Below, in pieces: positions 314 to 64,000 of a DNA stretch of 64,000 bases; positions within the stretch are counted from its first letter, which is position 1; every line of letters begins with the position of its first letter. The DNA comes from Macrostomum lignano. Its lineage: Eukaryota. The stretch covers positions 248,001 through 312,000 of the forward strand of contig NIVC01000300.1 in assembly GCA_002269645.1 (NCBI GenBank), in the 5' to 3' direction. A model generated the notes under the pieces. That model was not told where the DNA came from, did no database searches, and worked only from the letters and a program-made list of their open reading frames with translations. The position numbers were made by a program, and so were the translations under genes.

Positions 314-3300
314 GTGCAATTCGTCTGCACAATGAACCCGGTGTCAGTGGGTGGAGGCAGACAGAATCTGTCATCATCGTTAACCAAACTGCTCCTGAAT
401 GTGCACATTGAGGCGATGTCGAGAGAAGATACGGCTTTGATTATTAGAGAAAGATTTGCGAATAGGTTTCATGGAGAAGTTTAACGAGTAATTCAGTACC
501 ACCTGAAAATATTAGACTTTTCGACGAATAATACAGCTCGTAGGTTCAACATTAGGGATGTGGAAAAAGTTGCTGACCTAACCGATGTCATGCGCGGCTC
601 TGATCCGATTGGAGCTGCTTTGCGAATAGTTTACCATGAATGCGATCCTGAGGCGATCTCAGGCCAGCTTGGCGAAGCTCTGTCAGACGATTGTATGCTG
701 CCATCGCACCTTGATATCGGAGAAGTCATTCACTCACGAGATAGTCTTCGGAAGGTAAAGCCGACTCAAAGACTGCTTTCATTACTACACGCTTCAATAG
801 CGGCAAAGAAGGTTTGCCTGCTGACGGGTCCCCCAGCCTCGGGTAAAACTAGTGCAGTTTTCGAGCTTGCCCGGCGCCTTAAAAAGAAGATTTACTTCAT
901 CCCCATCCACGCCGAAACAAGCATTGCTGATCTGCTTGGCGGAATCGCACCCACTGATCTGCAAGAAACCGGTGACGATCAAAGAAAAAATGCGCAAAGT
1001 TTGGCAGCAACAATGGCAAAAAGGTATCCAGATGATGCAATTCAAATTATTGCTCCAAAGACTGCGAAGATAAAAAGGCATGCTGAACACAAGCCGACAT
1101 CTCAAAAAAAGAAACTCAAAAATCTAAAAAAGATTGTCGGTGAGAGTGCAATCGGCAGTGAAAAATATAAAAATGACGGATTCAAATTTATCGACGGCCC
1201 CTTGCTATCAGCATTGAAAGAAGGAGCATGGGTGCTCCTCGACGGAGTGGACTTGGCTCGCCCAGAAGTACTTGAGCGGCTGAACTCTCTTGGAGAACGA
1301 GACTCTTATCTATACACGCATGAACTAGCAGCTGGCAAATCTACTGAGCACAAACTCAAGCCTTGCGAGGGTTTTGCACTCATTTGCACAACTACTGACC
1401 AAAGATCAAATGGCAGTCAGCTATCTGAGTCCTTCAAAAATCGGTGCATACAGATATATTGCCCAAGATTCGATGTTGATTGTGATGCTTTGTGTGGCAC
1501 GCAGGTACTGATTGAGCCAGGAGCTCTAGTAGAACCTTTAAAAGTAAAGCTAGTGAAACTTTTAGTAGATGCCTTTCTGAAAGACAAAAGTCAACTTGGA
1601 TTTAGGTGGTTACAAAAGCAGATAAATGCAATTTCGCATATAAAGGACTCAAAAGCAGTAACTGACCTGCTGCCCGATTCCTGGTCAGATTTTGTACCCA
1701 GTCTAGAAGCAATTTTCAACGAGAAAAACTTTGGACAGCATCGAAATTTCTCAGGTAAAATTCAACTACTAAAGTTCGAGCTACCTGCAATGAAACTGGC
1801 TTCTGTGGAACTGAAGAAGCCCCTATCTGAAATTTTCGAGCTTCTTTCCGAAACATGCAGTCCAATTGGCCTATTGAAAGATGCGCCCATATTCTGCAGG
1901 AGGCGGAATGCGATTGCCCGCTTAGAGGAAAATCCAGAAGCGCAAGTGCGTTTGAAAATGGAAAGTGAGCCGTTTAAAAACAAGATTTTTAGTTCGATCT
2001 GGTCCCGAGATGTGCAGTTAACTTGCTCCAGCCTCGCCTTGAACCCACCAGGAGGACTGGAACGGTGGACTCTGTCTGGGATAATCGAGGATCAACGAAT
2101 CAACGAACTGAAATGGAAGCTGCACAGTCCTATTGGTGAAAAAACCATGTGCCTCGATATTCAAGCATCCAGTACAAATCTTCAGTTGGAAGACTTTTTG
2201 AGCAGGAAAACTCTTTCGCACATTGGCTATTTGGACGATCTCAAATGCATTAAGTTTCAGTCAGGGGAATACAGATGTCATATTAATAAAGCGAATGAAC
2301 TGAAACCAGAAAAAGCAGAATTGCAGGGTGGCAACGGAATTTTGAGTGGAGTAAATGTTAAGAATGCTACGCTGGTTATCAATATTTCAAAGTCACCTGC
2401 CAATTGGAAACTAACCAGCATGATTGGCCTGCTGACAAGTGGCGAGTTTAATGTGCACTTGACAAGCGAAAACCCTCATGCCGAACAAACAGACAAGTTT
2501 GCTACTCTTGATTTACTACCAGCTCTTCAGCTCTGTTTTCCGAATTACTTTAAAGCACCGAGTAAATTCACAGCTGAGGCGCCAGCAATCAGCTTTTGGC
2601 AAACAAAAAAAGCCCAAACAAATTTTGGAACTGTGAAAATCAAAATAACCGATGGACACTGGAAATCACCGTTTGGGCTCAACGCCAATATGAAGCTTTC
2701 TAATAAAGAGAGCAAAATGACACTAAATTTGCAAGATAAATGTGGCGAACTGCAGATAAATGGTGACATGCTTATTTGTGCTGTCCACAGTGGCCTTCGG
2801 GTGACTGTCTGTCTTCAGAGAGCAGGTGAAGTCAAATTGGTTTCTAATCACTCAGACAAAGACTATATGGAGAGGCTGCTCTTGCAATACATTTCCAAAG
2901 AATACCTCAAAGGTCAAAAAGAGGCCGAATCTCCAAAGCTACAGCTGATGACTAGTAGCAGTACTGATAAAGTACGTGAAGACAACTGTATCCTCGAACT
3001 TGATCTTCGCGGTGAATGGTGCATTCTCCGGTTTCTGCATCTCAGCCATGCAAAACTCAGAGTCTCCTCGACACCTGGGCCAATTCTCGAGTTTTCTGCA
3101 AAGGTTTTTAAATCTGCATTCATAAACGTTAAAGCAAAATTAAGTGAAAGCTCCATGTCCATTGACTCGTTCGCAGTGGAACAAGAGATCGATCTGCTGA
3201 CAGTGCTGTCAGTGCTTAGCTACGAAAAGCCAGAATTGACTGAAGCACTTCAAAGCAATAACTTTTTTACAAAGCCTCAAAACATAACGCTATCTGTCAA

Positions 3301-6300
3301 AACTATGATACTTCAAGACAAAAGAACACAAATTTCCCTTGAAGTAACTTTCTCGAATTCTATTCGGCTGCCGGAGTTTTCAGGTCAAGTGAGCATTAAA
3401 AATGCTACCTTGCATATGGAATATCAAGAAGAGCAATGGAAATTTGAAATATATGGTACATTATTTGCCTTCGACTTACAACTCGCAAAGGTCACGTGTA
3501 ACATCGGAGAAAACGGAATGGAGTTGAATGCTGCCAATTCAGAACAAAAATCCTGCCTAAATTTGCAAACGATCCTTGCAAAACTCTGTGGAGAGACCGA
3601 AGCCCTGCTAGTTTCTGAAACCTCAATAATTGGAGCGATCGATAATATACACGGGGAGCAGAGAATAGAAGAAGCGAATGACAGAGAAAGCAGAGAATGG
3701 GATTTGGAAGGGAAAGTTGAAAATTTCAACTTGTGCCAGGAATTAATTTCGAATATGCAGTATGAGGACACGAAACTGAAAGCAAAATTTTCTGAAACTA
3801 AAACTGACTGCAGGGTCGAAATTTCAGGTGACTTCATTCTCGCATTAACCCTTCGGCTCAAATATACTGTCGAATTCAGAACAGGGTCAGATATTGTATT
3901 AACAGCAGAAAGCAGTGCCATACAGGAAAATGGAAGCTTTATGGACTGCCTGCTCAATATTATAGAAATAAATGACGGATCGCAACAAAATACTGAAAAA
4001 CTCGGCATAAATAAAGTAAAACTGACGCTGAATATTTCGAAACAAGTTCTAAGTATCACCGGATCTATCACTGACGATTCAGTACTAAGTCTCGCAAACA
4101 TAGTGGAGTCGTTTGAGTCCCTGTTAGATGTAGAAGCCGGTGTGAGCAAAACAGAGTTTCTATCCGAGATGAAGTTCCAGCAGATAAAGGTTGAGTACAA
4201 AAACGAGAGAAAAAAGCATGTTAAAGAAAAGGCGTCGCAAGCTTCGCCTGTACAAACAGGTGACGAAAAGCATGAAGACAAAGCTGTTGAATCAAAGACT
4301 GAGAAATTGAATACCGAATCTACTACTGGCGAATCAGATAGCAAACACAGCGTGGCTGTGAGCGCAACAATGCCCTCTTTCCGATTCCCATTCACTGAAA
4401 TGATGGAACTAAAGAATCTTAACTTGTCCATCAACTGGAACAGCGTCGAGGGCATGAAAGACTTCAAAGTAACGGCTCAACTTTTAATTGCAAAGTACGA
4501 AGTCGGAAAGGTGGCCTTCAAATACGGAAAGAATGAAGATGGTGAGAACTCGTGGCTACTAGCTCTTCCCGAATCGTTTCAGCCTGACGCAGAAGCGCAG
4601 CTTGAGCCGCAAGCACTAGAACAGCCGATAAAGTTGAACGAACTGCTCATGTCGCTTCTGGGCATGAGTTCTATGCCAGACTTCAAATTGGAAGTGACCC
4701 ACATCAACCTGTTCATGTCTTGGAAGGAGAGAATACAGCCTGACCGTTGGAAGTTTGTCCTTCAACTCAACGAGCTAGAGATAGGCAGCGAGGATTTGAA
4801 GTTTAAGCTAAAAGATGTCAAGCTAATTGCAAGCAATATGAACGAAAATAAGGATGTTGACATTAAGGAGACGTTTACGTCTGCAAAGATATCGTTTAGT
4901 CTCGAGTTTGGCAACCAACGCACTGCAAAAGTGTTCCAGTTGGACAATTGTGAAGCTGAGCTACCTATAAGCAAAAATGCAAAGTGGAGGCTAAAAGTTC
5001 CGAAAAAGTCGGTGGACTACAGTATTGGAGACCTGGCATCGGCTCTGCTACCGCTTAGGGATACGGCAGGTAAAATCAATGATTTGGACCTGCCATTCGA
5101 CTTGACAATCAAAATGCTTGCCTTGGACATGGAGATGACGCGGGATCTCCATTTTTGCGACTTTGATTTTGAAGTGGTAGGAGAGTTGCAGTCTAGCTTT
5201 AAGTTTATCGATCAAATCATATTCGGAGTGAAGATTTTGCTCCTTAAGAAAAGCGTGACAGAAACTTCCGTCGCTAAGAAGAGCATCGAGTCAAACGAGC
5301 AACATGAAGCGGATAATAACACATCAGAGAAGGACAAGAGTGAAACAAATAAGCGTCAAGAAGGAAATTCCGACAATACAAATCAAATCCCAGATACAAA
5401 CGGTTGGGAAGTAGTGGGCTTCTGTTTTCTGAACATATTTACTCTCCCCATTAAGATGGTGCTAGTTGTTAATAACGAGCGCTGTGTTTTGGAACTCAGA
5501 TCGGAATTTCAATCTGGTCTCGTCGGCTGTCTTAATCCTTCATTCGGCGAACTAAGAGACGCTGCTCTAAATAAAATAGATGAATCAATTCAGCCAAACG
5601 AACAAACTATTGAGAGCGATGAAAAGCCGACTTCTCCAGAAAACAGTTCGACAAGTGAAGTTGGCGACAAAGCCAACGTCGAAAAGTGTGCACTCGTAGC
5701 CAGCGAATGTGATGCTGAGGAATCTCGCGAGTCAATGCTAGCTAGAAAGCCTCAAGAAAAGACTTTAAATGTAGCCAAAGTTGTTGCGGATCTTTTGGAC
5801 CTTCAGCCAGAACAGCTGCCCAATCTGATGCTAAAGTGGGATCCAGCTAAACTGTTTGATGCACACATCGACTTGACAGAAAGGAAAGGAGAGTTTCAAC
5901 TGCAATTGACTCAAATGAACTTTGAAATGCACAAATTGGCTATGCAGTTCAATAACACAAAGCTTTCTGTATCAGCAAGTCTCGGTGCAAAGCCTGTAGC
6001 AGCTCCAGCAGCTTCCATTGAAGGAGCACCAGCCCCAGTGTCTGGTACAAAAACGGAAAAAGAGGAACAATCAAAGTCGAGCAGTGATTCGTTGAGTAAA
6101 AAGACACAACAGCCACAACAGAGCAAAGCAGATTCGCCAAAGTATCATGTTACTCTTGAAGGAGAGCTAAAATTTCTTCGTTTGCCACCACTCGGATACA
6201 AAGCGGATTTAAATTCAAACGAAAAAGAAACTATTTTCTCTCTCACATCGGAGTGCAATTCAGATTTGAGCCTCGCAAACATAGTGGAGTCGTTTGAGTC

Positions 6301-9300
6301 CCTGTTAGATGTAGAAGCCGGTGTGAGCAAAACAGAGTTTCTATCCGAGATGAAGTTCCAGCAGATAAAGGTTGAGTACAAAAACGAGAGAAAAAAGCAT
6401 GTTAAAGAAAAGGCGTCGCAAGCTTCGCCTGTACAAACAGGTGACGAAAAGCATGAAGACAAAGCTGTTGAATCAAAGACTGAGAAATTGAATACCGAAT
6501 CTACTACTGGCGAATCAGATAGCAAACACAGCGTGGCTGTGAGCGCAACAATGCCCTCTTTCCGATTCCCATTCACTGAAATGATGGAACTAAAGAATCT
6601 TAACTTGTCCATCAACTGGAACAGCGTCGAGGGCATGAAAGACTTCAAAGTAACGGCTCAACTTTTAATTGCAAAGTACGAAGTCGGAAAGGTGGCCTTC
6701 AAATACGGAAAGAATGAAGATGGTGAGAACTCGTGGCTACTAGCTCTTCCCGAATCGTTTCAGCCTGACGCAGAAGCGCAGCTTGAGCCGCAAGCACTAG
6801 AACAGCCGATAAAGTTGAACGAACTGCTCATGTCGCTTCTGGGCATGAGTTCTATGCCAGACTTCAAATTGGAAGTGACCCACATCAACCTGTTCATGTC
6901 TTGGAAGGAGAGAATACAGCCTGACCGTTGGAAGTTTGTCCTTCAACTCAACGAGCTAGAGATAGGCAGCGAGGATTTGAAGTTTAAGCTAAAAGATGTC
7001 AAGCTAATTGCAAGCAATATGAACGAAAATAAGGATGTTGACATTAAGGAGACGTTTACGTCTGCAAAGATATCGTTTAGTCTCGAGTTTGGCAACCAAC
7101 GCACTGCAAAAGTGTTCCAGTTGGACAATTGTGAAGCTGAGCTACCTATAAGCAAAAATGCAAAGTGGAGGCTAAAAGTTCCGAAAAAGTCGGTGGACTA
7201 CAGTATTGGAGACCTGGCATCGGCTCTGCTACCGCTTAGGGATACGGCAGGTAAAATCAATGATTTGGACCTGCCATTCGACTTGACAATCAAAATGCTT
7301 GCCTTGGACATGGAGATGACGCGGGATCTCCATTTTTGCGACTTTGATTTTGAAGTGGTAGGAGAGTTGCAGTCTAGCTTTAAGTTTATCGATCAAATCA
7401 TATTCGGAGTGAAGATTTTGCTCCTTAAGAAAAGCGTGACAGAAACTTCCGTCGCTAAGAAGAGCATCGAGTCAAACGAGCAACATGAAGCGGATAATAA
7501 CAAATCAGAGAAGGACAAGAGTGAAACAAATAAGCGTCAAGAAGGAAATTCCGACAATACAAATCAAATCCCAGATACAAACGGTTGGGAAGTAGTGGGC
7601 TTCTGTTTTCTGAACATATTTACTCTCCCCATTAAGATGGTGCTAGTTGTTAATAACGAGCGCTGTGTTTTGGAACTCAGATCGGAATTTCAATCTGGTC
7701 TCGTCGGCTGTCTTAATCCTTCATTCGGCGAACTAAGAGACGCTGCTCTAAATAAAATAGATGAATCAATTCAGCCAAACGAACAAACTATTGAGAGCGA
7801 TGAAAAGCCGACTTCTCCAGAAAACAGTTCGACAAGTGAAGTTGGCGACAAAGCCAACGTCGAAAAGTGTGCACTCGTAGCCAGCGAATGTGATGCTGAG
7901 GAATCTCGCGAGTCAATGCTAGCTAGAAAGCCTCAAGAAAAGACTTTAAATGTAGCCAAAGTTGTTGCGGATCTTTTGGACCTTCAGCCAAACAGCTGCC
8001 CAATCTGATGCTAAAGTGGGATCCAGCTAAACTGTTTGATGCACACATCGACTTGACAGAAAGGAAAGGAGAGTTTCAACTGCAATTGACTCAAATGAAC
8101 TTTGAAATGCACAAATTGGCTATGCAGTTCAATAACACAAAGCTTTCTGTATCAGCAAGTCTCGGTGCAAAGCCTGTAGCAGCTCCAGCAGCTTCCATTG
8201 AAGGAGCACCAGCCCCAGTGTCTGGTACAAAAACGGAAAAAGAGGAACAATCAAAGTCGAGCAGTGATTCGTTGAGTAAAAAGACACAACAGCCACAACA
8301 GAGCAAAGCAGATTCGCCAAAGTATCATGTTACTCTTGAAGGAGAGCTAAAATTTCTTCGTTTGCCACCACTCGGATACAAAGCGGATTTAAATTCAAAC
8401 GAAAAAGAAACTATTTTCTCTCTCACATCGGAGTGCAATTCAGATTTGAGCCTCGCAAACATAGTGGAGTCGTTTGAGTCCCTGTTAGATGTAGAAGCCG
8501 GTGTGAGCAAAACAGAGTTTCTATCCGAGATGAAGTTCCAGCAGATAAAGGTTGAGTACAAAAACGAGAGAAAAAAGCATGTTAAAGAAAAGGCGTCGCA
8601 AGCTTCGCCTGTACAAACAGGTGACGAAAAGCATGAAGACAAAGCTGTTGAATCAAAGACTGAGAAATTGAATACCGAATCTACTACTGGCGAATCAGAT
8701 AGCAAACACAGCGTGGCTGTGAGCGCAACAATGCCCTCTTTCCGATTCCCATTCACTGAAATGATGGAACTAAAGAATCTTAACTTGTCCATCAACTGGA
8801 ACAGCGTCGAGGGCATGAAAGACTTCAAAGTAACGGCTCAACTTTTAATTGCAAAGTACGAAGTCGGAAAGGTGGCCTTCAAATACGGAAAGAATGAAGA
8901 TGGTGAGAACTCGTGGCTACTAGCTCTTCCCGAATCGTTTCAGCCTGACGCAGAAGCGCAGCTTGAGCCGCAAGCACTAGAACAGCCGATAAAGTTGAAC
9001 GAACTGCTCATGTCGCTTCTGGGCATGAGTTCTATGCCAGACTTCAAATTGGAAGTGACCCACATCAACCTGTTCATGTCTTGGAAGGAGAGAATACAGC
9101 CTGACCGTTGGAAGTTTGTCCTTCAACTCAACGAGCTAGAGATAGGCAGCGAGGATTTGAAGTTTAAGCTAAAAGATGTCAAGCTAATTGCAAGCAATAT
9201 GAACGAAAATAAGGATGTTGACATTAAGGAGACGTTTACGTCTGCAAAGATATCGTTTAGTCTCGAGTTTGGCAACCAACGCACTGCAAAAGTGTTCCAG

Positions 9301-12300
9301 TTGGACAATTGTGAAGCTGAGCTACCTATAAGCAAAAATGCAAAGTGGAGGCTAAAAGTTCCGAAAAAGTCGGTGACTACAGTATTGGAGACCTGGCATC
9401 GGCTCTGCTACCGCTTAGGGATACGGCAGGTAAAATCAATGATTTGGACCTGCCATTCGACTTGACAATCAAAATGCTTGCCTTGGACATGGAGATGACG
9501 CGGGATCTCCATTTTTGCGACTTTGATTTTGAAGTGGTAGGAGAGTTGCAGTCTAGCTTTAAGTTTATCGATCAAATCATATTCGGAGTGAAGATTTTGC
9601 TCCTTAAGAAAAGCGTGACAGAAACTTCCGTCGCTAAGAAGAGCATCGAGTCAAACGAGCAACATGAAGCGGATAATAACAAATCAGAGAAGGACAAGAG
9701 TGAAACAAATAAGCGTCAAGAAGGAAATTCCGACAATACAAATCAAATCCCAGATACAAACGGTTGGGAAGTAGTGGGCTTCTGTTTTCTGAACATATTT
9801 ACTCTCCCCATTAAGATGGTGCTAGTTGTTAATAACGAGCGCTGTGTTTTGGAACTCAGATCGGAATTTCAATCTGGTCTCGTCGGCTGTCTTAATCCTT
9901 CATTCGGCGAACTAAGAGACGCTGCTCTAAATAAAATAGATGAATCAATTCAGCCAAACGAACAAACTATTGAGAGCGATGAAAAGCCGACTTCTCCAGA
10001 AAACAGTTCGACAAGTGAAGTTGGCGACAAAGCCAACGTCGAAAAGTGTGCACTCGTAGCCAGCGAATGTGATGCTGAGGAATCTCGCGAGTCAATGCTA
10101 GCTAGAAAGCCTCAAGAAAAGACTTTAAATGTAGCCAAAGTTGTTGCGGATCTTTTGGACCTTCAGCCAAAACAGCTGCCCAATCTGATGCTAAAGTGGG
10201 ATCCAGCTAAACTGTTTGATGCACACATCGACTTGACAGAAAGGAAAGGAGAGTTTCAACTGCAATTGACTCAAATGAACTTTGAAATGCACAAATTGGC
10301 TATGCAGTTCAATAACACAAAGCTTTCTGTATCAGCAAGTCTCGGTGCAAAGCCTGTAGCAGCTCCAGCAGCTTCCATTGAAGGAGCACCAGCCCCAGTG
10401 TCTGGTACAAAAACGGAAAAAGAGGAACAATCAAAGTCGAGCAGTGATTCGTTGAGTAAAAAGACACAACAGCCACAACAGAGCAAAGCAGATTCGCCAA
10501 AGTATCATGTTACTCTTGAAGGAGAGCTAAAATTTCTTCGTTTGCCACCACTCGGATACAAAGCGGATTTAAATTCAAACGAAAAAGAAACTATTTTCTC
10601 TCTCACATCGGAGTGCAATTCAGATTTGAGCCTCGCAAACATAGTGGAGTCGTTTGAGTCCCTGTTAGATGTAGAAGCCGGTGTGAGCAAAACAGAGTTT
10701 CTATCCGAGATGAAGTTCCAGCAGATAAAGGTTGAGTACAAAAACGAGAGAAAAAAGCATGTTAAAGAAAAGGCGTCGCAAGCTTCGCCTGTACAAACAG
10801 GTGACGAAAAGCATGAAGACAAAGCTGTTGAATCAAAGACTGAGAAATTGAATACCGAATCTACTACTGGCGAATCAGATAGCAAACACAGCGTGGCTGT
10901 GAGCGCAACAATGCCCTCTTTCCGATTCCCATTCACTGAAATGATGGAACTAAAGAATCTTAACTTGTCCATCAACTGGAACAGCGTCGAGGGCATGAAA
11001 GACTTCAAAGTAACGGCTCAACTTTTAATTGCAAAGTACGAAGTCGGAAAGGTGGCCTTCAAATACGGAAAGAATGAAGATGGTGAGAACTCGTGGCTAC
11101 TAGCTCTTCCCGAATCGTTTCAGCCTGACGCAGAAGCGCAGCTTGAGCCGCAAGCACTAGAACAGCCGATAAAGTTGAACGAACTGCTCATGTCGCTTCT
11201 GGGCATGAGTTCTATGCCAGACTTCAAATTGGAAGTGACCCACATCAACCTGTTCATGTCTTGGAAGGAGAGAATACAGCCTGACCGTTGGAAGTTTGTC
11301 CTTCAACTCAACGAGCTAGAGATAGGCAGCGAGGATTTGAAGTTTAAGCTAAAAGATGTCAAGCTAATTGCAAGCAATATGAACGAAAATAAGGATGTTG
11401 ACATTAAGGAGACGTTTACGTCTGCAAAGATATCGTTTAGTCTCGAGTTTGGCAACCAACGCACTGCAAAAGTGTTCCAGTTGGACAATTGTGAAGCTGA
11501 GCTACCTATAAGCAAAAATGCAAAGTGGAGGCTAAAAGTTCCGAAAAAGTCGGTGAACTACAGTATTGGAGACCTGGCATCGGCTCTGCTACCGCTTAGG
11601 GATACGGCAGGTAAAATCAATGATTTGGACCTGCCATTCGACTTGACAATCAAAATGCTTGCCTTGGACATGGAGATGACGCGGGATCTCCATTTTTGCG
11701 ACTTTGATTTTGAAGTGGTAGGAGAGTTGCAGTCTAGCTTTAAGTTTATCGATCAAATCATATTCGGAGTGAAGATTTTGCTCCTTAAGAAAAGCGTGAC
11801 AGAAACTTCCGTCGCTAAGAAGAGCATCGAGTCAAACGAGCAACATGAAGCGGATAATAACAATCAGAGAAGGACAAGAGTGAAACAAATAAGCGTCAAG
11901 AAGGAAATTCCGACAATACAAATCAAATCCCAGATACAAACGGTTGGGAAGTAGTGGGCTTCTGTTTTCTGAACATATTTACTCTCCCCATTAAGATGGT
12001 GCTAGTTGTTAATAACGAGCGCTGTGTTTTGGAACTCAGATCGGAATTTCAATCTGGTCTCGTCGGCTGTCTTAATCCTTCATTCGGCGAACTAAGAGAC
12101 GCTGCTCTAAATAAAATAGATGAATCAATTCAGCCAAACGAACAAACTATTGAGAGCGATGAAAAGCCGACTTCTCCAGAAAACAGTTCGACAAGTGAAG
12201 TTGGCGACAAAGCCAACGTCGAAAAGTGTGCACTCGTAGCCAGCGAATGTGATGCTGAGGAATCTCGCGAGTCAATGCTAGCTAGAAAGCCTCAAGAAAA

Positions 12301-15300
12301 GACTTTAAATGTAGCCAAAGTTGTTGCGGATCTTTTGGACCTTCAGCCAGAACAGCTGCCCAATCTGATGCTAAAGTGGGATCCAGCTAAACTGTTTGAT
12401 GCACACATCGACTTGACAGAAAGGAAAGGAGAGTTTCAACTGCAATTGACTCAAATGAACTTTGAAATGCACAAATTGGCTATGCAGTTCAATAACACAA
12501 AGCTTTCTGTATCAGCAAGTCTCGGTGCAAAGCCTGTAGCAGCTCCAGCAGCTTCCATTGAAGGAGCACCAGCCCCAGTGTCTGGTACAAAAACGGAAAA
12601 AGAGGAACAATCAAAGTCGAGCAGTGATTCGTTGAGTAAAAAGACACAACAGCCACAACAGAGCAAAGCAGATTCGCCAAAGTATCATGTTACTCTTGAA
12701 GGAGAGCTAAAATTTCTTCGTTTGCCACCACTCGGATACAAAGCGGATTTAAATTCAAACGAAAAAGAAACTATTTTCTCTCTCACATCGGAGTGCAATT
12801 CAGATTTGAGCCTCGCAAACATAGTGGAGTCGTTTGAGTCCCTGTTAGATGTAGAAGCCGGTGTGAGCAAAACAGAGTTTCTATCCGAGATGAAGTTCCA
12901 GCAGATAAAGGTTGAGTACAAAAACGAGAGAAAAAAGCATGTTAAAGAAAAGGCGTCGCAAGCTTCGCCTGTACAAACAGGTGACGAAAAGCATGAAGAC
13001 AAAGCTGTTGAATCAAAGACTGAGAAATTGAATACCGAATCTACTACTGGCGAATCAGATAGCAAACACAGCGTGGCTGTGAGCGCAACAATGCCCTCTT
13101 TCCGATTCCCATTCACTGAAATGATGGAACTAAAGAATCTTAACTTGTCCATCAACTGGAACAGCGTCGAGGGCATGAAAGACTTCAAAGTAACGGCTCA
13201 ACTTTTAATTGCAAAGTACGAAGTCGGAAAGGTGGCCTTCAAATACGGAAAGAATGAAGATGGTGAGAACTCGTGGCTACTAGCTCTTCCCGAATCGTTT
13301 CAGCCTGACGCAGAAGCGCAGCTTGAGCCGCAAGCACTAGAACAGCCGATAAAGTTGAACGAACTGCTCATGTCGCTTCTGGGCATGAGTTCTATGCCAG
13401 ACTTCAAATTGGAAGTGACCCACATCAACCTGTTCATGTCTTGGAAGGAGAGAATACAGCCTGACCGTTGGAAGTTTGTCCTTCAACTCAACGAGCTAGA
13501 GATAGGCAGCGAGGATTTGAAGTTTAGGCTAAAAGATGTCAAGCTAATTGCAAGCAATATGAACGAAAATAAGGATGTTGACATCAAGGAGACGTTTACG
13601 TCTGCAAAGATATCGTTTAGTCTCGAGTTTGGCAACCAACGCACTGCAAAAGTGTTCCAACTGGACAATTGTGAAGCTGAGCTACCCATAAGCAAAAATG
13701 CAAAGTGGAGGCTAAAAGTTCCGAAAAAGTCGGTGAACTACAGTATTGGAGACCTGGCATCGGCTCTGCTACCGCTTAGGGATACGGCAGGTAAAATCAA
13801 TGATTTGGACCTGCCATTCGACTTCACAATCAAAATGCTTGCCTTGGACATGGAGATGACGCGGGATCTCCATTTTTGCGACTTTGATTTTGAAGTTCGT
13901 TGTGGGTTCAAGTCAAGCGTAGAAAAGTTTGAAATAGCTTGTCTGGGCTTCAAAATTTGTTACGGAGACGTAAAAAAGAATGCTGCTTCTTCACAAGAAT
14001 CGAAAATCGATTACGTTTCCTCTGGTGATGATTCAAAGAATTATTCAGGTGGGCTACCGTTAGGAAATAAATGGAAAGTATCGGCTTTTTGTTTGTTTAG
14101 GTTGTTTAATTCCGATTTTTGGATGCTTTTGAATGCAGAAGAGAAAGAATTGATATTCAACTCTGATTTTATTGGCTCTCTAAAGAGCATTGATCGGACG
14201 GGCTCGAAATCGTTATCTTTTTGTGATTTTGCACCTATTGATGACGATGAGGAAGACTGGAGCGTGAAGCCTTTATTAGATAAATTTGGAGAAGTTCCTC
14301 TGCCTGAAAATTCTTTGATTGTGAAAGTGAATTGGAGAAGGAAGACTTTTGTTTTGTCATCTGACTTGGATCGCTTTCAGGTGGCCGTCGCTGGCACAAA
14401 ACCTGGAAAAAAGCAGCTTTATTTAATTGGCTTGATGTATAAGCAAGACGAAAAATTGAGTTCGATTTGGAGCAAGCTGGAATTTTTGGATAGCATTGAT
14501 TGTCTCCCTACGTTTAAGGACATCAAGTTATTTTTATTCTTGCATTCAAGGAAGCTTGACTGTGCCTCAAAGTGTCGGGAGCTGTTTAATGATTTGCAGA
14601 AAGTAATGTCGTTTGGTTCAACCGATTTGCCAAATTTCGTTCAATCGAAAAAAGTCTCGAAGTTAATAGCGGTATTTTCGATCACGGCGCAGATGCCTGA
14701 CAATTGGTTATATACTGTACTCAATTTGGACGGCAGTCAATTTTCTGCCAACCTAGTGGTGCATAGATCAAAGGCTGCATTGGTCGCCTCTCTCGGAGAA
14801 TGTAGGTTGACCAAAAAACTAGTTTTGAATGCTGAGCTTCGACTTGTTAAGGTGAATTCAAAAGTTGATTTTTGCCTTGACGTCAGTCTAAAGTTTCCCC
14901 TGCCAACAAACTTCAAGTGCTCAGAGTTTCACAACGCTGCTTTGGCAGGTTCTCTGGAAGTAAAAACAGCTAAAAAGTCCGTGAGTGGCAGACTGGAGCT
15001 CAGAGGTGATGATGGAACGGCATGGCCCACTCCGTTTGGTCTTAAGTGTTTGACTGTGAGAAAGCTTTCGGCTGAGTTTGGGCTGCAGTTAAAGAAAGCA
15101 ATATCTTTTCAGATTCAAGTAGAAGTGAAGCTTTTCCAAACTGAACTTGGATTGACTGTTCAAGTGGTGGATGGCTTGATAGTAGCAGCAAATTTTTATT
15201 TCTATTATGATGGTAGTGTAAAAGAGCCACTTAGTCTCGTTGACTTATTAAAAGTTTTTGAAGGAGAAATTGATCTTGAGGTGGCTCGACTACTTCTTCC

Positions 15301-18300
15301 TGCATTCGATCACTTGTTTTTCTTGTACATCGCGCCTAGATTTAGTCTGGAGAATGTTAAATTTCCGGATCGAGCAGAATTCGTCCAGAGAATTAGCCAG
15401 GCTCAGGAGCAAAGTTGTGAGGGCAAAACCAGTGAAAAAACTCATGAATCTGACGGTAAAGGAAGTGATGTGGCTGGTTTCGTAACTTCTTTTGATTTTT
15501 CCGGACCAGTAGTAAAACTTGACGCTTCGATAACTTGGTTTGGTGCAACTGTAGCTCTGTGGGGAGAAATTTCGTGGGGAGATCCTAAAAATCCACGGCT
15601 ACAGTTTGGCGGATTGGTTAAAAAGCCTGTCAGAATTCTGCAACTTCTTGAAATATCGGAGTTCGACCAGCCCGCTGAAACGGGCCCGTATATCAACTTT
15701 CTAGTCAACAGGCAGGACGGTGTGAAGTTTTATTCAAGTGCTCGAATAAAGTTTCTCTTCTTGTGCGTTGGCGTGAAAATCGAACTCGACAGCAGCAGAA
15801 AATGCTTTAAGATTTCCGGAACATTTGAAATTCTTCACACGCTAAAAGTTTCAGGTTATATTTGCTTCGGCCTTCGCGGCTTCGTACCAACAATTGACTG
15901 GAATTTCAACTTTGAAATTAGCGAAAACATAAAAACTTTCATCGAAAAAGTCGTCAACAAAGTCACAGAGTTCTTTAGCGACATCGAGAAGAGCCTTGAT
16001 TCTAAAATCAAAAGCTTAGAAGAGAAGATTGAAAATTCGGAAGGAATCTGGAACATTGTACTTCGTGTCACAGATTCACTGCTTAAAGTTGGACGAGCTA
16101 TCATGCATGGAATAATGGCAGGCATAGATTTTATCGCTAATTGCATACAAGGGATCCGCGACTTTTTCAACAGAATATGGAACGAAAAATCTCCCCTAAC
16201 AACGGAGAACAGTCCCGTCAAGAAAATGTTGGTTTCTGGAGAAACTGAGAAGGATGGAGAGTTTCGAGCTTCCGCGTGCTACCATGTAGAAATGGAGGGC
16301 CAAACGTGCGCTGGAAAGTTCGAGTTCATGTTCAGTGATGCCTCCGGAGAAGAGTCCAGGACAAAGTTTGAAAACGGAATCGTAGACAGCATAGCGTCAG
16401 ACTACGTCGCCGCAAAATCTACGCAGCACGGGGGAGATCAAGAGCCAAACTTTTCTGACACGAACTTGACGGAAGAAAACCGACAGCAACTGAATTCAAT
16501 GAAGTCGCGCCTCGAAAAAGTCCAATCTCTGATGCAGGAAGCTAATAACAAAAAATTGATATCCGAATTTGACGACGGAGATAGTCGACGGTATTGCGGT
16601 GACAACAATGACCAGGGTAAAAATTCCGAAGGTCTTGACACATATGGACAAACCACCTGTGAAAATGATCAAGTTGATTCAGCGAGCAGAGATTGTGCAA
16701 CACAAAAAACTGAGAACGAGTGTAAGACTTTTAAGAACCGTGAAACGGCAAATGATAGCGATCGAGAAAATTTTGAACTGAAGTCTGAATCCATAGAGGA
16801 GCAACCAAAAACTGAACAAAAGGAACCGGATTGTGGAGAGAAACGGGAAGAAGAGGAGCATGAAAAACGAGTGAACGAGCAAGTGAACTCTGAAGAAAAA
16901 CAGGAAGAAAAGCAGGAAGAAGCTGAAGAAAAGCAGGAAGAAGCTGAAGAAAAGCAGGAAGAAAAGCAGGAAGTAGCTGAAGAAAAGCAAGAAGAAAAGC
17001 AGGAAGAAGCTGAAGAAAAGCAGGAAGAAGCTGAAGAAAAGCAGGAAGAAAAGCAGGAAGTAGCTGAAGAAAAGCAAGAAGAAAAGCAGGAAGAAGCTGA
17101 AGAAAAGCAAGAAGAAAAGCAGGAAGAAACTGAAGAAAAGCAGGAAGAAGCTGAAGAAAAGCAAGAAGAAAAGCAGGAAGAAACTGAAGAAAAGCAGGAA
17201 GAAGCTGAAGAAAAGCAGGAAGAAGCTGAAGAAAAGCAAGAAGAAAAGCAGGAAGAGGCTGAAGAAAAGCAAGAAGAAAAGCAGGAAGAAACTGAAGAAA
17301 AGCAGGAAGAAACTGAAGAAAAGCAGGAAGAAGCTGAAGAAAAGCAGGAAGAAACTGAAGAAAAGCAGGAAGAAGCTGAAGAAAAGCAGGAAGAAGCTGA
17401 AGAAAAGCAAGAAGAAAAGCAGGAAGAGGCTGAAGAAAAGCAAGAAGAAAAGCAGGAAGAAACTGAAGAAAAGCAGGAAGAAGCTGAAGAAAAGCAGGAA
17501 GAAGCTGAAGAAAAGCAAGAAGAAAAGCAGGAAGAGGCTGAAGAAAAGCAAGAAGAAAAGCAGGAAGAAACTGAAGAAAAGCAGGAAGAAACTGAAGAAA
17601 AGCAGGAAGAAGCTGAAGAAAAGCAGGAAGAGGTGGAAGAAAAGAAGGCAGAAGCAGAAGAAAGGCAGGCAGAAGCTTCAGACGATCAGCCAGAATCTGA
17701 AGTTTGTGGATCGGAAATCAAAGACAATCACCTAGAAGCAGAAGACAATGAACAAGAAGCTGAAGAAAATCAGGTACTCGAGGAAGCTGAACGCAGTGAA
17801 GTAAAGGCTGAAAACAAGCAGTCTGAAGCTGAAGAATATCAAAGAGAAAATAGCTCAAAGGAACCAGATACCGAAAGAGTTAAAATCAAAGAGAGTTTCT
17901 CCAAAACTGAAGAGAGTGTATCAGCAGAACCAGTATCAGCAACTGAAAATTCTGAGAATGAAGAGAGCCAACATGTAACTTCAAGTAGCCAACCTCAGGC
18001 TGAACGGAGCCACTTTGAATCCGAAGAGAGCCAACCTGATGCTAAAGAGAGCCAACCTGATGCTAAAGAGAGCCAACCTGATGCTAAAGAGAGCCAACCT
18101 GATGCTAAAGAGAGCCAACCTGATGCTAAAGAGAGCCAACCTGATGCTAAAGAGAGCCAACCTGATGCTAAAGAGAGCCAACCTGATGCTAAAGAGAGCC
18201 AACCTGATGCTAAAGAGAGCCAACCTGAAGCTAAAGAGAGCCAACCTAATGCTAAAGAGAGCCAACCTGAAGCTAAAGAGAGCCAACCTGATGCTAAAGA

Positions 18301-21139
18301 GAGCCAACCTGATGCTAAAGAGAGCCAACCTGATGTTAAAGAGAGCCAACCTGATGCTAAAGAGAGCCAACCTGATGGTAAAGAGAGCCAACCTGATGCT
18401 AAAGAGAGCCAACCTGATGGTAAAGAGAGCCAGCCTGAAGCTAAAGAGAGCCAGCCTGAAGCTAAAGAGAGCCAACCTGAAGCTAAAGAGAGCCAACCTG
18501 AAGCTATAGAGAGCCAGCCTGAAGCAAAGGAGAGACAGCCTGAAGCTGCCGAATATCCATCAGAAAATCAGGACGAGAATATTGCGACAGATCAAAAGCG
18601 ATCGGAGCCAATAGAGAGACGAGTTAGTTTTGCTAGCTTAGATGATGCAAGCCTGCATGGAGAACATCATGGCAATAATGATGGACCGCTGGTGCAGGAA
18701 CCAAAAAATTCCTATTTGGAAGATGACGATCAAAATGATGACTCACCAAATGGTAACGCACTTGAGGATTCTATGGAGCAACAGATGAAAGAAGTTGGAC
18801 ATGATGATTTCGATGGCGATCCGTGCACGATACGGTTTGGCTTTGAACTGAGTGAAAACGATGCTGCAAATCAAGGATCAGCTGAAGATTCTGTTTCGGT
18901 TGAAGAGGAAACTCAAAATGATACCGAAAATGATACTGAAAGTGGCACTGCGGATGACACTGAAAGTTCCGATTCTGAGCCACAAAAGCCAACACCTGAA
19001 AGTGGCGGTTACCTCCTGCGAGCATCGGAACTGACCGATGAGGATAAAAAGCAGCAAGTGCCTGAAAGCAGCTTGCAATGCGACATGAGCGGCAAAAATG
19101 TTCCAGGAGAGTGTGAATTCCACGAGACCGAAAGCAGAGAGGATTCGAATGACAACTCCTTAAAAACCGAGATTGCTCCAACTGAGAGGCGCGAACGTGT
19201 CCGAAGAAATAAGAAAATCGCAATATTTAAAGCGGAAGAAACCAACTGGTACAACATTCGTCACCTTGAATTTTACAACTTTTTTCTGTGTCAAAAAAGA
19301 AAATCAGAAGACCTTTTCCAACTTGCAGAAGCAATGAGCGTACCAGCTTCCGGCTCCAGAGTTTTGAGTCCCAGTAGCAGGCTGCAAGAACAGAAGGCGT
19401 TGATATTTATTGACTTTCGATGCATTGAAAGAGGCTATAGTGAGAGTTTGAATTACTTGTTGTTTCGTCTTCTGAGAGAAGCGAGCAGGAATGGAATACC
19501 TACAGATGTTGTGCTGACCGGTGACAGAAACTTTCAGGTGGAAAACCAGCGCTACGAATGCGTGATAAATATTCCTGCCGTCGTGTTTGAGGCTAAAAAG
19601 CCAATAATGCCACACAGCTTCCGCAAGCTGCTCCACAGGCTCCGTAGCCACACAGATGACGAGGCCATGATGCAATTCTACTGCGAGCACATTCAATGTA
19701 CCCCTCAATGGCTGTTCCTGATCACGAACAATTTCCGGTCATTTTCGCAGTTAGCAAAAAGACAGCTTGCAGATGTCAAGAGACCTGAAGCGTATTACGC
19801 TTTGCTTGGTGATGAAGCTGGTTCAATTGAATTCGGGAGCATTGCACTTGACGAACCCGAACCTCAGTTTGTTCCTGACGACTTTATTGCATCTCTAAGC
19901 TTTATGAAGACCGGGAGCGAATCCCCAGCCGAGCAAGACTGGAATAATCTATTTATGATTCCTGAAACTTTCAAAAAAGAAGTATTAGAAGAATGGGGAG
20001 TGCTGGAAAGTGCCGAAAGGGAAGTTGATACCACAGTGTTGAAACCACGCGGTGTTGATACTACAGATCGAAGAATAAAGGTATTCATAAAGGCCACAAA
20101 ATGCTTGCCAGCACTTCAACGAACATCATTATTGCCAACAGAGCATTTGAAATCTCATCAAACCATCAATTTTTCTGAATCTGAAACTAAAGAGGCGAAA
20201 GAAAGCTGGATGCTGATAAGGGAAACGACCGAGTCGGTTTGGATACAAATTTTTAAAGAGTTTCAGGGAATTTTTGCCAATTCCCGAAAGCGATATCGGC
20301 TAGCCGCTAGAGGCAAGAAGCTGAGCATTCGGGGGTTAATGAACTGGTACATGACAAACGGAGCAAACAACTTGATTTGGCTTCGGCCAATAGAATCACA
20401 GCGACGCGTCAAAATTGCTATGGGCATTGCTGTTGCTCTCACCAGCAGCACCATCAGCGCCAGACCCCTGCTGCTCCACAGTTTAGTGACCCTAGTCGAG
20501 GCATTTGAACGATTGAAGATTTCCGTATGCTGCGTGTCATTCTCAGAATCCTTGACAGTCATTAAGAACCCTGGCGTGGTCTGGCAGGTATCCGATAAAA
20601 TTCAACTGCTGAGATCCTTCACAAGCTTGGAGATTGTCCAATCAGTAAAAAGAGAAAAAGACATATATGCACTGCATCATTTAATGGCTCTTCTGCTGAA
20701 CGACGCAACCTTATCTTGGAATGACTACCGCACCATTCTGGTGCTCACGGACTCGGAGGTACCACAGTGTCAAAGGGAGAAAATAAGTGACTTTGAATTG
20801 CAAGCAGCCAGCAGAGGCGTGAAATGCTTTGCACTGAGTGTTGGAGAAGCAATGGCTGACCAGTACGGACTGTCAAAAAGCGTTCATGCCAGCAACATAG
20901 GTGGTTTGCCAGCTGCAGTGAAAACTATTCTAATGCAGCCTACGGGAGAAGAAGCAGAGTCAAGTCAAGCTCGGCATAACTGGTCAGATACTCCTGACAG
21001 CGAGAAACCATCATGGGATAATTACTGTGATGATTGCAACTGTATGAAACTGAATCCTGTCAAGCCTGACGGGGCTAATCCAAACGATGGAAAGTATTTG
21101 TCGGTCGGATTTGATTACTGCACTTTGGACAAAAAATAA
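314..21139 (+). CDS. Giant midasin-like AAA+ / beta-repeat / acidic / VWA protein (5'-partial, ~6,940 aa after repairing 1 in-frame TAA and 3 single-base deletions)
   Basis: AT-rich intron ending TTTCCAG at 313, then VQFVCTMNPVSVGGGRQNLS (midasin-type TMNP..GGR..L). ORFs 302-484, 560-8008, 8008-9465, 9345-11954 and 11954-21139 join into one frame. Walker A GPPASGKTS at 827-853; DLLGG...GFKFIDGPLLSALKEGAWVLLD; C-terminal GKKLSIRGLMNWYMTNGANNLIWLR resembles the midasin pre-MIDAS segment GKRLNMRKIIPYIAS..KDKIWLR. Not called MDN1 because the central region is unlike midasin. Confidence 0.8.
800..1480 (+). other. MoxR/midasin-type AAA+ module with long helix-2 insert
   Basis: VCLLTGPPASGKT (Walker A), ETSIADLLGG, ~75-aa basic insert, DGPLLSALKEG, WVLLDGVDLA (Walker B position), EVLERLNSL, ICTTT, QLSESFKNRC (R finger region). 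Confidence 0.85.
4091..13896 (+). repeat. Coding tandem repeat, 2,181-bp (727-aa) unit, ~4.5 near-identical copies
   Basis: CTCGCAAACATAGTGGAG recurs at 4091, 6272, 8452, 10632 and 12812; identity is lost after TTTGAAGT at ~13896. The same shadow ORFs recur at this spacing in the ORF track. Confidence 0.97.
16892..17640 (+). repeat. Coding low-complexity repeat (EEKQ / EEKQEEA / EEKQEET; 12- and 21-bp units)
   Basis: GAAGAAAAGCAGGAAGAAGCT-type units read in frame in ORF 11954-21139. Confidence 0.95.
18024..18545 (+). repeat. Coding 21-bp heptad repeat (ESQPDAK), ~25 copies
   Basis: GAGAGCCAACCTGATGCTAAA tandem units with D/E/N and A/G/V variants. Confidence 0.95.
20290..20940 (+). other. 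C-terminal midasin/CobT-type VWA domain, MIDAS motif degenerate
   Basis: GKKLSIRG...IWLR...KIAMGIAVALTSST...SLVTLVEAFERLKISVCCVSFSESLTVI...TILVLTDSE...CFALSVG follows the VWA beta/alpha order; the DxSxS aspartate is absent. Confidence 0.7.
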
Positions 21140-29300: not shown

Positions 29301-30336
29301 AGCCATAGCTGAAGATCTGCTGGGTGGCGCCACGCAGGGGAACGTGCTGCAGGTGTTAGAAGTTCTGCTCGCTCATGACATTGCAGCTCGCGCCGCTGTC
29401 GACCAGCACGTTGAATTCTTTCCCTTCGATCTGCAGGCGCATGTTGGCCGATCTTTGCCCTGACGACGCAGCCGGCGTCTGTATCGTGAATGCTTCTTCG
29501 GTGAGGTTGTCGGGCGAGACATAGATTGAGCTGCCGTCCGTGTTGTTTGCAACCACGTTGATGCTGGAAGAGTTCTGCTGCCGGCGTTGCCTGCAGGCCT
29601 TTGCGAGGTGGTTGGGCTTGCCGCATGACGAGCAGGTCTTCCCTTTCGCGGCGCCGCAGCTGCTGTGGCCGCGCTCTCCACAGCGGTAACAGGTGGTGTT
29701 GGAGGCGAATGTCGGCCTCTGGCCGTTTGGCTGTGGCTGGTCTCTGCGCTGGTTTGATGCCGACTTGTGAATGGCCGCGATGCTGCTGCTGCTGCTCTCC
29801 ATGGCTGTGGCCTGCTCTTCCGCGGCTTCTAGTGCGCGAGCCTGTCTGAGAGCATCGTTCAATGCGATGTTGCTCTCCTGGAGCAGTCGCCGTCTGAGCT
29901 TGTCGGAGCAGCAAGTTGCGACGATCTGGTCTCTAATGAGAGAATCCTTCAGGGTGGAGAACTCGCAGGCTTCAGCAGCTGCCTTTAGTCTAGCGTACCA
30001 GGCGTCCACCGGCTCTCCAGTCTGCTGCACGCAAAGTCTGAACTGGTAGCGGGCGAAGACGATACTCTTGCGTTCGTCAAAGTGTGCTGTAAGAGCGGCC
30101 AGCAAGTTGCTGAGGCTGTCTTTCTTGTCGTCCGGCAGGTCCTTGACGATTTGGGCGATCTCCCTGCCTGCCGTGTAGGACAGCAGTTTGCACTTCTGAG
30201 TTTCGGCCGTAATTCCGGATGCGTCGATAAAGTCGCGGAAGCGATCGGCCCACACGGTCCACCGTTTAGAGATGTTTTGTTGATCAGTGTTTGTGCTGAA
30301 TTGCTCAGGCGGTGGCAGGGAGATGAAATGCGCCAT
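26334..30336 (-). pseudogene. Gypsy gag-pol (single frame, interrupted)
   Basis: Gag with Cys/His knuckles (CYRCGERGH..C; CSSCGKPNHLAKAC), protease LVDSGAS, RT (LDITKAFHQ, WAHDDI), RNase H (VDASPVGLGA), integrase (MDF, ISDNGPPF, NGATER). In-frame TAA at 29356-29358 and a frameshift at ~27170. Confidence 0.92.
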
Positions 30337-33410: not shown

Positions 33411-34046
33411 TTAAATTGGTTTTATAATTACCTTCGGTTTGTTGGGGTTGTTTTCTAAAAGCCAATTAGCAAGCCAAGTGATGGGATCGTTTGGCTTTTT
33501 CTTGCAGAGTTCAGTCAGGCCCTTAAGAACAGTGGGATTTACGGTGCGAGCTAGGTAGGACTTGGCGGCCTCTCCAATCGGAATGGGCTCCACAATGCTG
33601 TCCGGAAAGAAAAAACGAATCTCCTTCTCAGCAGTCGTAAAGCTATCACTTCCGTGTAGTGCATTCTGCTGGTCGTCTGTGCCGTATTTTGCTCTCAAGC
33701 AGTCCGGATGAGTCTGTTTTGCAATCAGAGAGTTTGTAGGTCCAATGAGCTCTCGCCAGGAACTGATGGCTTGATCTTTGGCGAGAACCAACGCAACAAC
33801 AGGTCCGCTACTCATGTACGTAATCAGACTTGGAAAGAACATCTTTCCGAAATGCTCCGCGTAGAATTCACTGGATTGTTCGGGTGTCAGTTGAACCTTC
33901 CGCTTTTGTAGGACAGAAAATCCAGAGCGAGTAATAACATCCTCAATCTCGTCAGCATGGTGGACCGCGTCAGGCTTTATGACTGCGAGCGTTCTTTCAA
34001 CGTAAATCTGGGGCTTTGACATTTTATTTTCTCCTTCTTCAGGCAT
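33411..34046 (-). CDS. NME5: Nucleoside diphosphate kinase homolog 5 (NDK domain + C-terminal Dpy-30 domain), 211 aa, intronless
   Basis: ERTLAVIKPDAV, FYAEHFGKMFFPSLITYMSSGP, SSWRELIGPTNS, NALHGSDS, then VNPTVLKGLTELCKKKPNDPITWLANWLLENNPNKP; length and domain layout match NME5/NM23-H5. Confidence 0.95.
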   Translation of the reverse strand: MPEEGENKMSKPQIYVERTLAVIKPDAVHHADEIEDVITRSGFSVLQKRKVQLTPEQSSEFYAEHFGKMFFPSLITYMSSGPVVALVLAKDQAISSWRELIGPTNSLIAKQTHPDCLRAKYGTDDQQNALHGSDSFTTAEKEIRFFFPDSIVEPIPIGEAAKSYLARTVNPTVLKGLTELCKKKPNDPITWLANWLLENNPNKPKVIIKPI

Positions 34047-51445: not shown

Positions 51446-51754
51446 ACGCCTCAGTCTAAAATCCCAGTAACGTAAATGTAAACGTACGTTGTACAGAAAT
51501 CTGCGAGAACAAAACAATGGGATTGAATGAGCGACCAAAACGGAAATGGGGAAAACCAAATACGCTCGTAAATTTACGCGAAAGTTCGCATTTACACGTA
51601 CGGCTCAATTGGTTGCCATGGAAACCAAAGCATCCGTTAGATTATTAAGATACTCGTATGTGAAAATTAATCTAGATAGTGCCATTGCAAAGGGCAAAAT
51701 TTACACTGGGCGACACTCGGACACGCGGGATATCAGAACGGGTTGCCATGGTTA

Positions 51755-62663: not shown

Positions 62664-62847
<184 letters not shown>

Positions 62848-63840: not shown

Positions 63841-64000
<160 letters not shown>

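Follow-up and report, generated by a model that had tools for sequence, protein, structure and literature searches.

The window analysed here, a stretch of 64,000 nt from contig NIVC01000300.1 (positions 248,001 to 312,000) of the Macrostomum lignano Mlig_3_7 assembly (GCA_002269645.1), carries on its forward strand, from 314 to 21139, the 3′ ~80% of a real gene for a giant, midasin-like AAA protein (Table 1). Together with its upstream exons, the gene encodes, in order, an N-terminal domain, six AAA modules, a very long linker, an acidic tract and a VWA-like end; this is the layout of Rea1, in which an N-terminal domain and a six-AAA ring are followed by a linker, a stretch rich in D/E and then a MIDAS domain (PMC6286127). 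We propose that the product is probably a distant paralogue of midasin (Rea1/MDN1). Much of this had been put forward in the original prediction, which was made from the letters of the window: the extent of the coding sequence (314-21139), the midasin-like order of the parts, the acidic tract and the distinction from the MDN1 of ribosome biogenesis all hold. The family also proves to be undescribed, as had been supposed: outside AAA_5, Pfam and NCBIfam recognise nothing in the protein, its Owenia fusiformis orthologue is annotated “uncharacterized protein”, and a literature search for a midasin-like paralogue of this kind found nothing relevant.

Positions 1-313 of the forward strand contain many stops and end in ...ttccAG, and we therefore set the start of the coding sequence at 314. 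The first exon segment, which is 48% identical to the matching Owenia exon, runs into an in-frame TAA that is either an assembly error or a true nonsense change; the residues on either side of it align gap-free to a Paulinella protein (P0003, see below). An 18-nt “intron” at this site is ruled out, because the flanking residues align to the homologues without a gap. The whole of 314-21139 is nearly stop-free across four successive frames (2, 1, 3 and 2), with AAA6 and linker in one open frame and linker, acidic tract and C-terminus in another. With three bases restored, the window as assembled holds 56 + 6,885 codons, and ~1,960 upstream codons bring the protein to ~8,900 aa. The predicted size of at least 6,900 aa is true as assembled but is inflated by 3.5 additional copies of a 727-aa unit; with a single unit instead, the protein would have ~6,350 aa. 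An Rfam scan of the whole window found no RNA family.

The midasin-type AAA motifs at the N end are borne out by several comparisons. Pfam AAA_5 (PF07728; gathering cut-off 22 bits) scores 61.6 bits in the window (1e-16) and 60.3 and 179.5 bits in the upstream exons, and the top Protein Data Bank (PDB) relatives of the AAA part in the window are Rea1/Mdn1 (4e-59), with multiple midasin modules matched. The 9.4 kb upstream of the window (L001) hold three open stretches, beginning with MATDKF at a putative start codon near L001 2923, which add an N-terminal region of ~500 aa and then AAA1 to AAA5. Across these exons and the window we count six Walker A/B pairs spaced 275-390 aa apart; judged by these motifs, the ring consists of six AAA_5 modules in a single chain. 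The pairs of AAA3 and AAA5 are intact (Table 1), and in the Owenia ring AAA3 and AAA5 likewise have DE intact and the Walker B of AAA6, LLDNVDLA, lacks the Glu; the AAA2 and AAA4 motifs of Owenia were not picked up by the same Walker motif scan. The reconstructed 2,445-aa ring matches midasin at 5e-83 in the PDB, with partial module collinearity, and NorQ/CbbQ next, a similarity that lies far below the level of an MDN1 orthologue and points to a distant relation only. The AAA ring has a 100-degree (helix) periodicity of 1.37 times that of shuffles (z 6.3); N-terminal residues 1-500 show no helical periodicity and no PDB, Pfam or NCBIfam match. A similarity search with AAA part and linker as query returned weak AAA matches only.

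The closest single relative of AAA6, nearer than any midasin module, is P0003 of Paulinella micropora (EP00808_P028605), which is 29% identical over 382 aa of the lid and last AAA module (3e-31) and shares with M. lignano the motifs RPEVLERLNSLGE and NRCI as well as the Glu-less Walker B. The rest of P0003, in contrast, carries protein kinase domains and has no similarity to the linker or C-terminus of M. lignano. Immediately 5′ of the putative start codon lies a satellite (L001 1876-2697, ~6.7-7.5 kb upstream of window position 1) that is open in two frames, with a five-residue unit in each (GFSTR in frame 1, GALAP in frame 2).

The linker runs, as assembled, for ~5,000 codons from the end of AAA6 (~1700) to the acidic tract (~16,500). 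The original prediction had described it as a beta-repeat of ~4,700 aa, set against the alpha-helical stalk of midasin. Strand-like alternation is indeed present: in three M. lignano linker segments the hydrophobicity power at 170 degrees is 1.37-1.56 times that of shuffles (z 3.7-5.1), the same signal is found in the Owenia linker (2,200 aa; 1.51 times, z 7.7), and neither the AAA part nor the C-terminal part of the M. lignano protein shows it. We modelled window 13001-16600 with AlphaFold2 and three homologues: the model (mean pLDDT 36.9) assigns 47% of residues 1-960 to strands, 48 in number and of median length 10, and 12% to helices. Given this confidence, it is a secondary-structure tendency of the linker that is shown and no fold, so that “beta-repeat” stands as a description of the tendency but not of a structure. 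Foldseek with the linker model returned generic beta-meander proteins at non-significant scores (best E 2e-3, TM-score ≤0.1), which we discarded as evidence of fold.

A helical linker alignable to that of Rea1 was likewise not found. The linker has no Pfam or NCBIfam family match, and phmmer and profile searches of the PDB at E≤10 gave no match for it, the full-length Rea1/Mdn1 chains of 4,700-4,900 aa included; when the PDB was searched by sequence, the C-terminus, the VWA-like segment, profiles A2 and A3 and the linker drew chance matches only (pyruvate kinase, RPC10, bS6; E ~0.3-1). Modelling and periodicity indicate that the linker is very probably strand-rich, and the searches indicate that it is very probably not homologous to the Rea1 linker. 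Its best-conserved part, behind the tandem array described below, is 28% identical to Owenia P0009 and to P0010 (E 1e-99 to 1e-102).

The acidic tract, with 24-56% D+E per 100 aa, contains coding minisatellites (Table 1), which make it probable that the length of the tether is polymorphic; Owenia has a low-complexity acidic region in the corresponding place. The C-terminus beyond it is 26% identical to that of Owenia (1e-42), and a VWA-like order can be followed through its motifs (IAMGIAVALTSST ... CVSFSE ... ILVLTDSE ... VKCFALSVG). No sequence method sees a VWA domain here: Pfam gives none at E≤10, PDB phmmer and PDB profile searches give none, Rea1-MIDAS included, and a similarity search with the C-terminus alone as query found no homologues; a word-index search with a three-sequence alignment of linker and C-terminus also returned nothing but missed its own members too and is hence uninformative. 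The support for a midasin-type VWA region, as had been predicted, is instead of fold and of low confidence. The AlphaFold2 model of the C-terminus (mean pLDDT 32.3) has an order of secondary structure that fits the beta1-alpha1-beta2-beta3-alpha2-alpha3-beta4-alpha4-beta5 topology of VWA, and the top 50 Foldseek matches to it in the PDB are all VWA (E 9e-6 to 3e-4; 80 matches at E≤1e-3), among them CMG2 (8.6e-6), integrin I domains, factor B, Rea1-MIDAS (6qt8, 5e-5) and NorD (8.7e-5). An hhalign comparison of the two-species alignment with six VWA domains, whose sequences were confirmed as PF00092 or PF13519, scored 26.0 (E 0.003, probability 10%), compared with 13.3±2.7 and a maximum of 20.9 in 60 column shuffles. 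The C-terminus is therefore likely, on the models, to adopt a VWA fold, but one in which the DxSxS MIDAS motif is unrecognisable in the beta1 loops of both M. lignano (AVALTSSTIS) and Owenia (IALTQKTLT); of the MIDAS signature, the beta4 “TD” Asp alone is retained in the two species.

The relatives of the linker are very few. An exhaustive HMMER search with window 13001-16600 as query against 1.84 billion representative proteins found five proteins, namely the window's own open reading frame (P0008) and four others. One is the 3,952-aa Owenia protein CAH1795990.1 (A0A8S4PQW1; P0009); two are fragments from Logan assemblies of SRA runs (P0010 and P0012), one of them 56% identical across the matched stretch; and the last is a 688-aa fragment (P0011), 30-32% identical to the linker, that is labelled as a protein of a Kangiellaceae metagenome-assembled genome (GCA_036350755.1) and lies on a 2.1-kb contig (JAZBNS010000684.1), probably as eukaryotic contamination of the Kangiellaceae bin. 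The literature, searched by the accessions of P0010 to P0012, held nothing of relevance.

The Owenia protein follows the collapsed M. lignano protein collinearly through the unit, the linker behind the array, the acidic tract and the C-terminus (1e-42 to 1e-81). Its upstream neighbour, 47 nt away on the same strand, is a 2,544-aa multi-AAA_5 model, 33-48% identical to the M. lignano ring and in collinear order with it; the two models, ring included, sum to 6,496 aa and probably belong to a single gene that was divided by a frameshift or by a small intron that went unrecognised. Because protein and neighbour together repeat the M. lignano order, the architecture is, by sequence comparison, kept as a whole between a flatworm and an annelid and is no misassembly chimera; the AAA and VWA-like parts, moreover, are bridged by shared open frames in the window. 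The “chimeric” origin that had been proposed for the protein finds no support. Flatworm and annelid thus share ~4,000 aa that have no family assignment. Side observations on the Owenia locus are a frame change between the two gene models (CAIIXF020000010.1, 9900-10010), two weak PBZ-like C-x-[YW]-W-x2-C...H...H zinc fingers after the VWA-like domain (P0009 ~3840-3900; zf-CCHH, E 0.019) and, in the last ~50 residues of P0009, a resemblance to a translated tRNA-derived short interspersed element. The fingers were not found in M. lignano, where no PBZ-type exon lies within 5 kb downstream of the stop.

About half of the apparent length of the gene is a very recent fourfold internal duplication. 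A tandem array of 9,809 nt supplies 3,270 aa of the linker as 4.5 near-identical copies, so that the ~4,700 aa of the original prediction, although the linker is very long as assembled, reduce to ~2,500 aa of unique sequence. Older repetition is fainter: self-comparison of the collapsed M. lignano protein finds a single weak old repeat (unit 412-592 against post-array 31-199, 22.6%), an old duplication of Owenia's own lies in the corresponding zone of its linker (521-1004 against 1042-1513, 25-37% identity), and the array unit is homologous to Owenia P0009 residues 1137-1479 and 750-960. The linker thus appears, from these alignments, to be made of old, diverged modules of ~500-700 aa, one of which, of 727 aa, was recently amplified in frame to ~4.5 copies.

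A less likely alternative is that the array is an assembly artefact, over-expanded or mis-collapsed, and that the true gene has ~1 to 1.5 units like its relatives. The copies are 99.8% identical, and the assembly, built by Canu on PacBio reads with Pilon for polishing, is error-prone, with just 64% of its bases called error-free by REAPR (bioRxiv 10.1101/151654). In a relative of ~50% identity (L005) the pre-linker is followed by unit tail, unit head and then post-linker, and the multi-copy array is missing; Owenia has just two old, diverged modules. However, the five-copy alignment has ten variable columns only, and the last, partial copy is the most diverged, with 8 private substitutions, next to homogeneous inner copies, which is the pattern of a true tandem array; the unit length is an exact multiple of three (3 × 727), and 9.8 kb fits within PacBio read length. 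The private substitutions of the last copy, the homogeneity of the inner ones and the frame-keeping unit together suggest that the array is real. If so, the fourfold amplification is specific to the M. lignano lineage, since L005 is without it. Identical antisense open reading frames of 167 aa that recur every 2,180 nt are by-products of the array and not genes.

Three 1-bp deletions, in copies 2, 3 and 4, account for the changes from frame 2 to 1, 3 and back to 2. All three coincide with columns that vary among the array copies, and they are most likely consensus or polishing errors in a Canu and Pilon assembly of near-identical repeats; the in-frame TAA is possibly such a consensus error too. 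The alternative is that the stop and frameshifts are real and that the locus, a redundant copy in a neopolyploid genome, has recently been inactivated and become a pseudogene. One in-frame stop and three deletions within 20.8 kb would fit such a copy, as would the 180-312 Mb of duplicated sequence in Mlig_3_7 and a karyotype with extra chromosomes (bioRxiv 10.1101/151654). We consider this unlikely, since ~6,940 codons are stop-free apart from four sites, the deletions all fall on copy-variable columns, as mis-polishing of near-identical repeats yields, and the unit length preserves the reading frame. Polishing-type errors within a near-identical array also mean that gene models for this giant locus in Mlig_3_7 will be fragmented and its size misjudged.

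Our results favour, with fair rather than full confidence, the reading of the gene as a distant midasin/Rea1 paralogue that has the midasin layout and a linker that is unrelated, strand-rich, modular and closed by a helical hairpin. Like midasin, it is a single chain in which six AAA_5 (MoxR-class) modules precede a very long linker, a disordered acidic region and, at the C-terminus, a probable VWA-fold domain, for which Rea1-MIDAS is among the Foldseek matches. It differs from midasin in the low similarity of its ring; in an N-terminal 500 aa, a linker and a C-terminus without sequence similarity; in a linker periodicity of strand type, not helix type; and in its unrecognisable DxSxS, degenerate AAA2 and AAA4 motifs and very narrow distribution. 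NorQ/NorD, CbbQ/CbbO and RavA/ViaA also pair an AAA_5 ATPase with a VWA-fold adaptor, and NorQ/CbbQ and NorD are found among the matches of ring and C-terminus, respectively; in those systems, however, single-module ATPases form homo-hexamers and the VWA protein is separate, whereas the M. lignano gene joins six modules and the VWA-like domain into a single polypeptide of ~6,400-8,900 aa. VWA8 is an animal protein with dynein-related AAA_5 modules and a C-terminal VWA domain; at ~1,900 aa it has neither a multi-thousand-residue linker nor an acidic tether, and we set it apart by description only.

Weighing against this reading are the low-confidence models, by which the strand-rich linker and the VWA fold are tendencies and not structures; an array copy number taken from the assembly; the stop and three frameshifts of the locus as assembled, with which this copy could be non-functional; and a mechanism drawn wholly by analogy with Rea1. 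The MIDAS domain of Rea1 docks onto the ring, and the bound assembly factor is pulled off through remodelling of the linker; how force is generated by the helical linker is still open (PMC6286127). By that analogy, ATP turnover in AAA3 and AAA5, and perhaps in AAA1, would remodel the ring of the M. lignano protein and move its beta-rich linker, and this movement would pull, via the acidic tether, on a partner bound by the VWA-like domain. With its degenerate MIDAS motif, the protein would probably not hold the partner by the canonical metal bridge, and the substrate is probably not the Rsa4/Ytm1 UBL domains.

The strand-rich linker could also be a repeating-beta-groove (RBG), taco-like sheet of the kind of VPS13, ATG2, BLTP and TamB, in which case the protein would use ATP to serve as a bridge or conduit for hydrophobic cargo; we regard this as improbable. 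In predicted secondary structure the linker resembles RBG proteins (VPS13, ATG2, BLTP1-3) and AsmA/TamB in its long amphipathic strands, which follow one another as hairpins in modular blocks split by loops or helices and give way to C-terminal amphipathic helices, and LptD and ApoB100 are among the non-significant Foldseek matches. In contrast to those proteins, it shows no sequence-family match (none in Pfam or NCBIfam to Chorein_N, VPS13, ATG2, Fmp27, AsmA or TamB for the window, P0009, P0010 and P0011) and no significant structural match, the model being of the low confidence given above, and period-2 amphipathicity is common to most beta-sheet folds. We know of no RBG protein fused to an AAA+ ring. 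Only as a long shot, therefore, do we raise the idea of a continuous beta rod or groove driven by the six-AAA ring and acting, with ATP as its power source, as a bridge for, or extractor of, hydrophobic or membrane-associated cargo or, in a weaker version, of a second, independent midasin-type pulling machine in animals. If true, the former would be a coupling of motor and conduit undescribed in any organism, and the latter would have a beta-sheet lever that changes in length over evolution with the number of module copies, and a non-ribosomal substrate.

Least probable is a fast-evolving MDN1 orthologue, the midasin of ribosome biogenesis: the domain order is identical and midasin is the ring's top PDB relative, but the Rea1/Mdn1 N-terminal domain, linker and MIDAS domain have no detectable similarity to the protein, the Walker motifs of AAA2 and AAA4 have degenerated, the MIDAS motif is gone from both phyla, and linker homologues occur in very few of 1.84 billion proteins whereas MDN1 is universal in eukaryotes. 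The ring score of 5e-83 over 2,445 aa, next to a linker and C-terminus with no PDB match to Rea1/Mdn1 or Rea1-MIDAS, supports by sequence that the gene is not an MDN1 orthologue. No eukaryotic motor other than midasin is known to have six AAA_5 modules in one chain and to pull a VWA domain by way of an acidic tether; a true paralogue of equal layout but with an unrelated, strand-rich linker of variable copy number and a degenerate MIDAS site would reveal what in the midasin design is essential. M. lignano is a model accessible to transgenesis and RNA interference, which makes the function of the gene directly testable.

Table 1. Features of the midasin-like gene and of its tandem array (window coordinates; AAA1 to AAA4 and the Walker pair of AAA5 are from the upstream exons in L001)
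Feature	Position	Strand	Remark	Basis
Coding start after AG acceptor (312-313)	314	+		sequence read
AAA5 large domain, C-terminal part	314..481	+	FVCTMNP...GGRQNL, sensor region	translation
In-frame TAA in otherwise continuous coding sequence	482..484	+		sequence read, translation
Open frame 2	485-8005	+		open reading frame reading
Open frame 1	7927-9462	+		open reading frame reading
Open frame 3	9321-11951	+		open reading frame reading
Open frame 2	11861-21136	+		open reading frame reading
AAA1			Walker A GDPGTGKT; Walker B LLLEEANLA; EE instead of DE	
AAA2			Walker A GQHFSGKY; Walker B LVLRSVNQL; degenerate	
AAA3			Walker A GNSGVGKT; Walker B IFIADEFNLA; intact	
AAA4			Walker A GPTSYKGT; Walker B CLLRDVNLA; degenerate	
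AAA5			Walker A GPPGTGKT; Walker B VILFDEVNLA; intact	
AAA5 lid and AAA6 module	485..1700	+		Pfam AAA_5 1e-16; midasin 4e-59
AAA6 Walker A	827-850	+	GPPASGKT	motif scan
AAA6 Walker B	1229-1258	+	VLLDGVDLA; catalytic Glu lost (to Gly)	motif scan
Unique strand-rich linker segment	1701..4087	+	~796 aa	periodicity 1.56, z 5.1
Tandem array, 4.5 copies	4088..13896	+	2,181-bp (727-aa) unit, 99.8% identity	self-comparison
Array copies	4088-6268, 6269-8448, 8449-10628, 10629-12808, 12809-13896	+		copy alignment
1-bp deletion, copy 2	~7990	+	column 1723 (others G, A, G); frame 2 to 1	copy alignment
1-bp deletion, copy 3	~9375	+	column 928 (others G, G, A, A); frame 1 to 3	copy alignment
1-bp deletion, copy 4	~11862	+	column 1235 (others C, A, A, A); frame 3 to 2	copy alignment
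Antisense 167-aa open reading frames	6145-6648, 8325-8828, 10505-11008, 12685-13188	-	by-products of the array	open reading frame list
Post-array strand-rich linker	13897..15925	+	best-conserved part	conservation, modelled secondary structure
AWPTPFGL motif	15020-15043	+	invariant	alignment columns
Predicted long helical hairpin, linker end	15926..16189	+	~37 + ~46 aa; conserved KLGRAI.HGI motif	model
Acidic low-complexity tether	~16500..~19200	+	~900 aa	composition
EEKQE-type repeats in acidic tract	16890-17677	+	21, 33 and 108 nt	repeat scan
KESQPDA repeat	18024-18547	+	21-nt unit × 25, 95% identity	repeat scan
C-terminal region before VWA-like domain	19202..20383	+	conserved with Owenia; mixed alpha/beta prediction	alignment, model
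VWA-like domain (likely)	20384..20942	+	degenerate MIDAS site	Foldseek, hhalign
Beta1 loop	20414-20452	+	IAMGIAVALTSST	motif
ILVLTDSEV	20735-20761	+		motif
VKCFALSVGE	20819-20848	+		motif
Stop codon TAA	21137..21139	+		sequence read

Downstream of the gene, the window holds further elements. A Ty3/gypsy-type long terminal repeat retroelement lies on the reverse strand at 26334-30336, at ~60% GC against a background of 37-45%, with a gag zinc knuckle, protease, reverse transcriptase, RNase H and integrase (RVT_1, RT_RNaseH, Integrase_H2C2, rve); an open frame at 43872-45335 on the same strand (~62% GC), with a weak reverse-transcriptase match, is probably another retroelement fragment. Between them, an intronless open reading frame of 211 aa (33411-34046, reverse strand) combines a nucleoside diphosphate kinase with a Dpy-30 motif, an NME5-like architecture of ciliary type; its exact sequence, when looked up, matched no record. 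From 48549 to 64000 the window is dense with unrelated mini- and microsatellites (periods of 4, 10, 13, 14, 19, 21, 22, 27, 48 and 264 nt) with strong local GC skew, which fit the repeat-rich genome of M. lignano.

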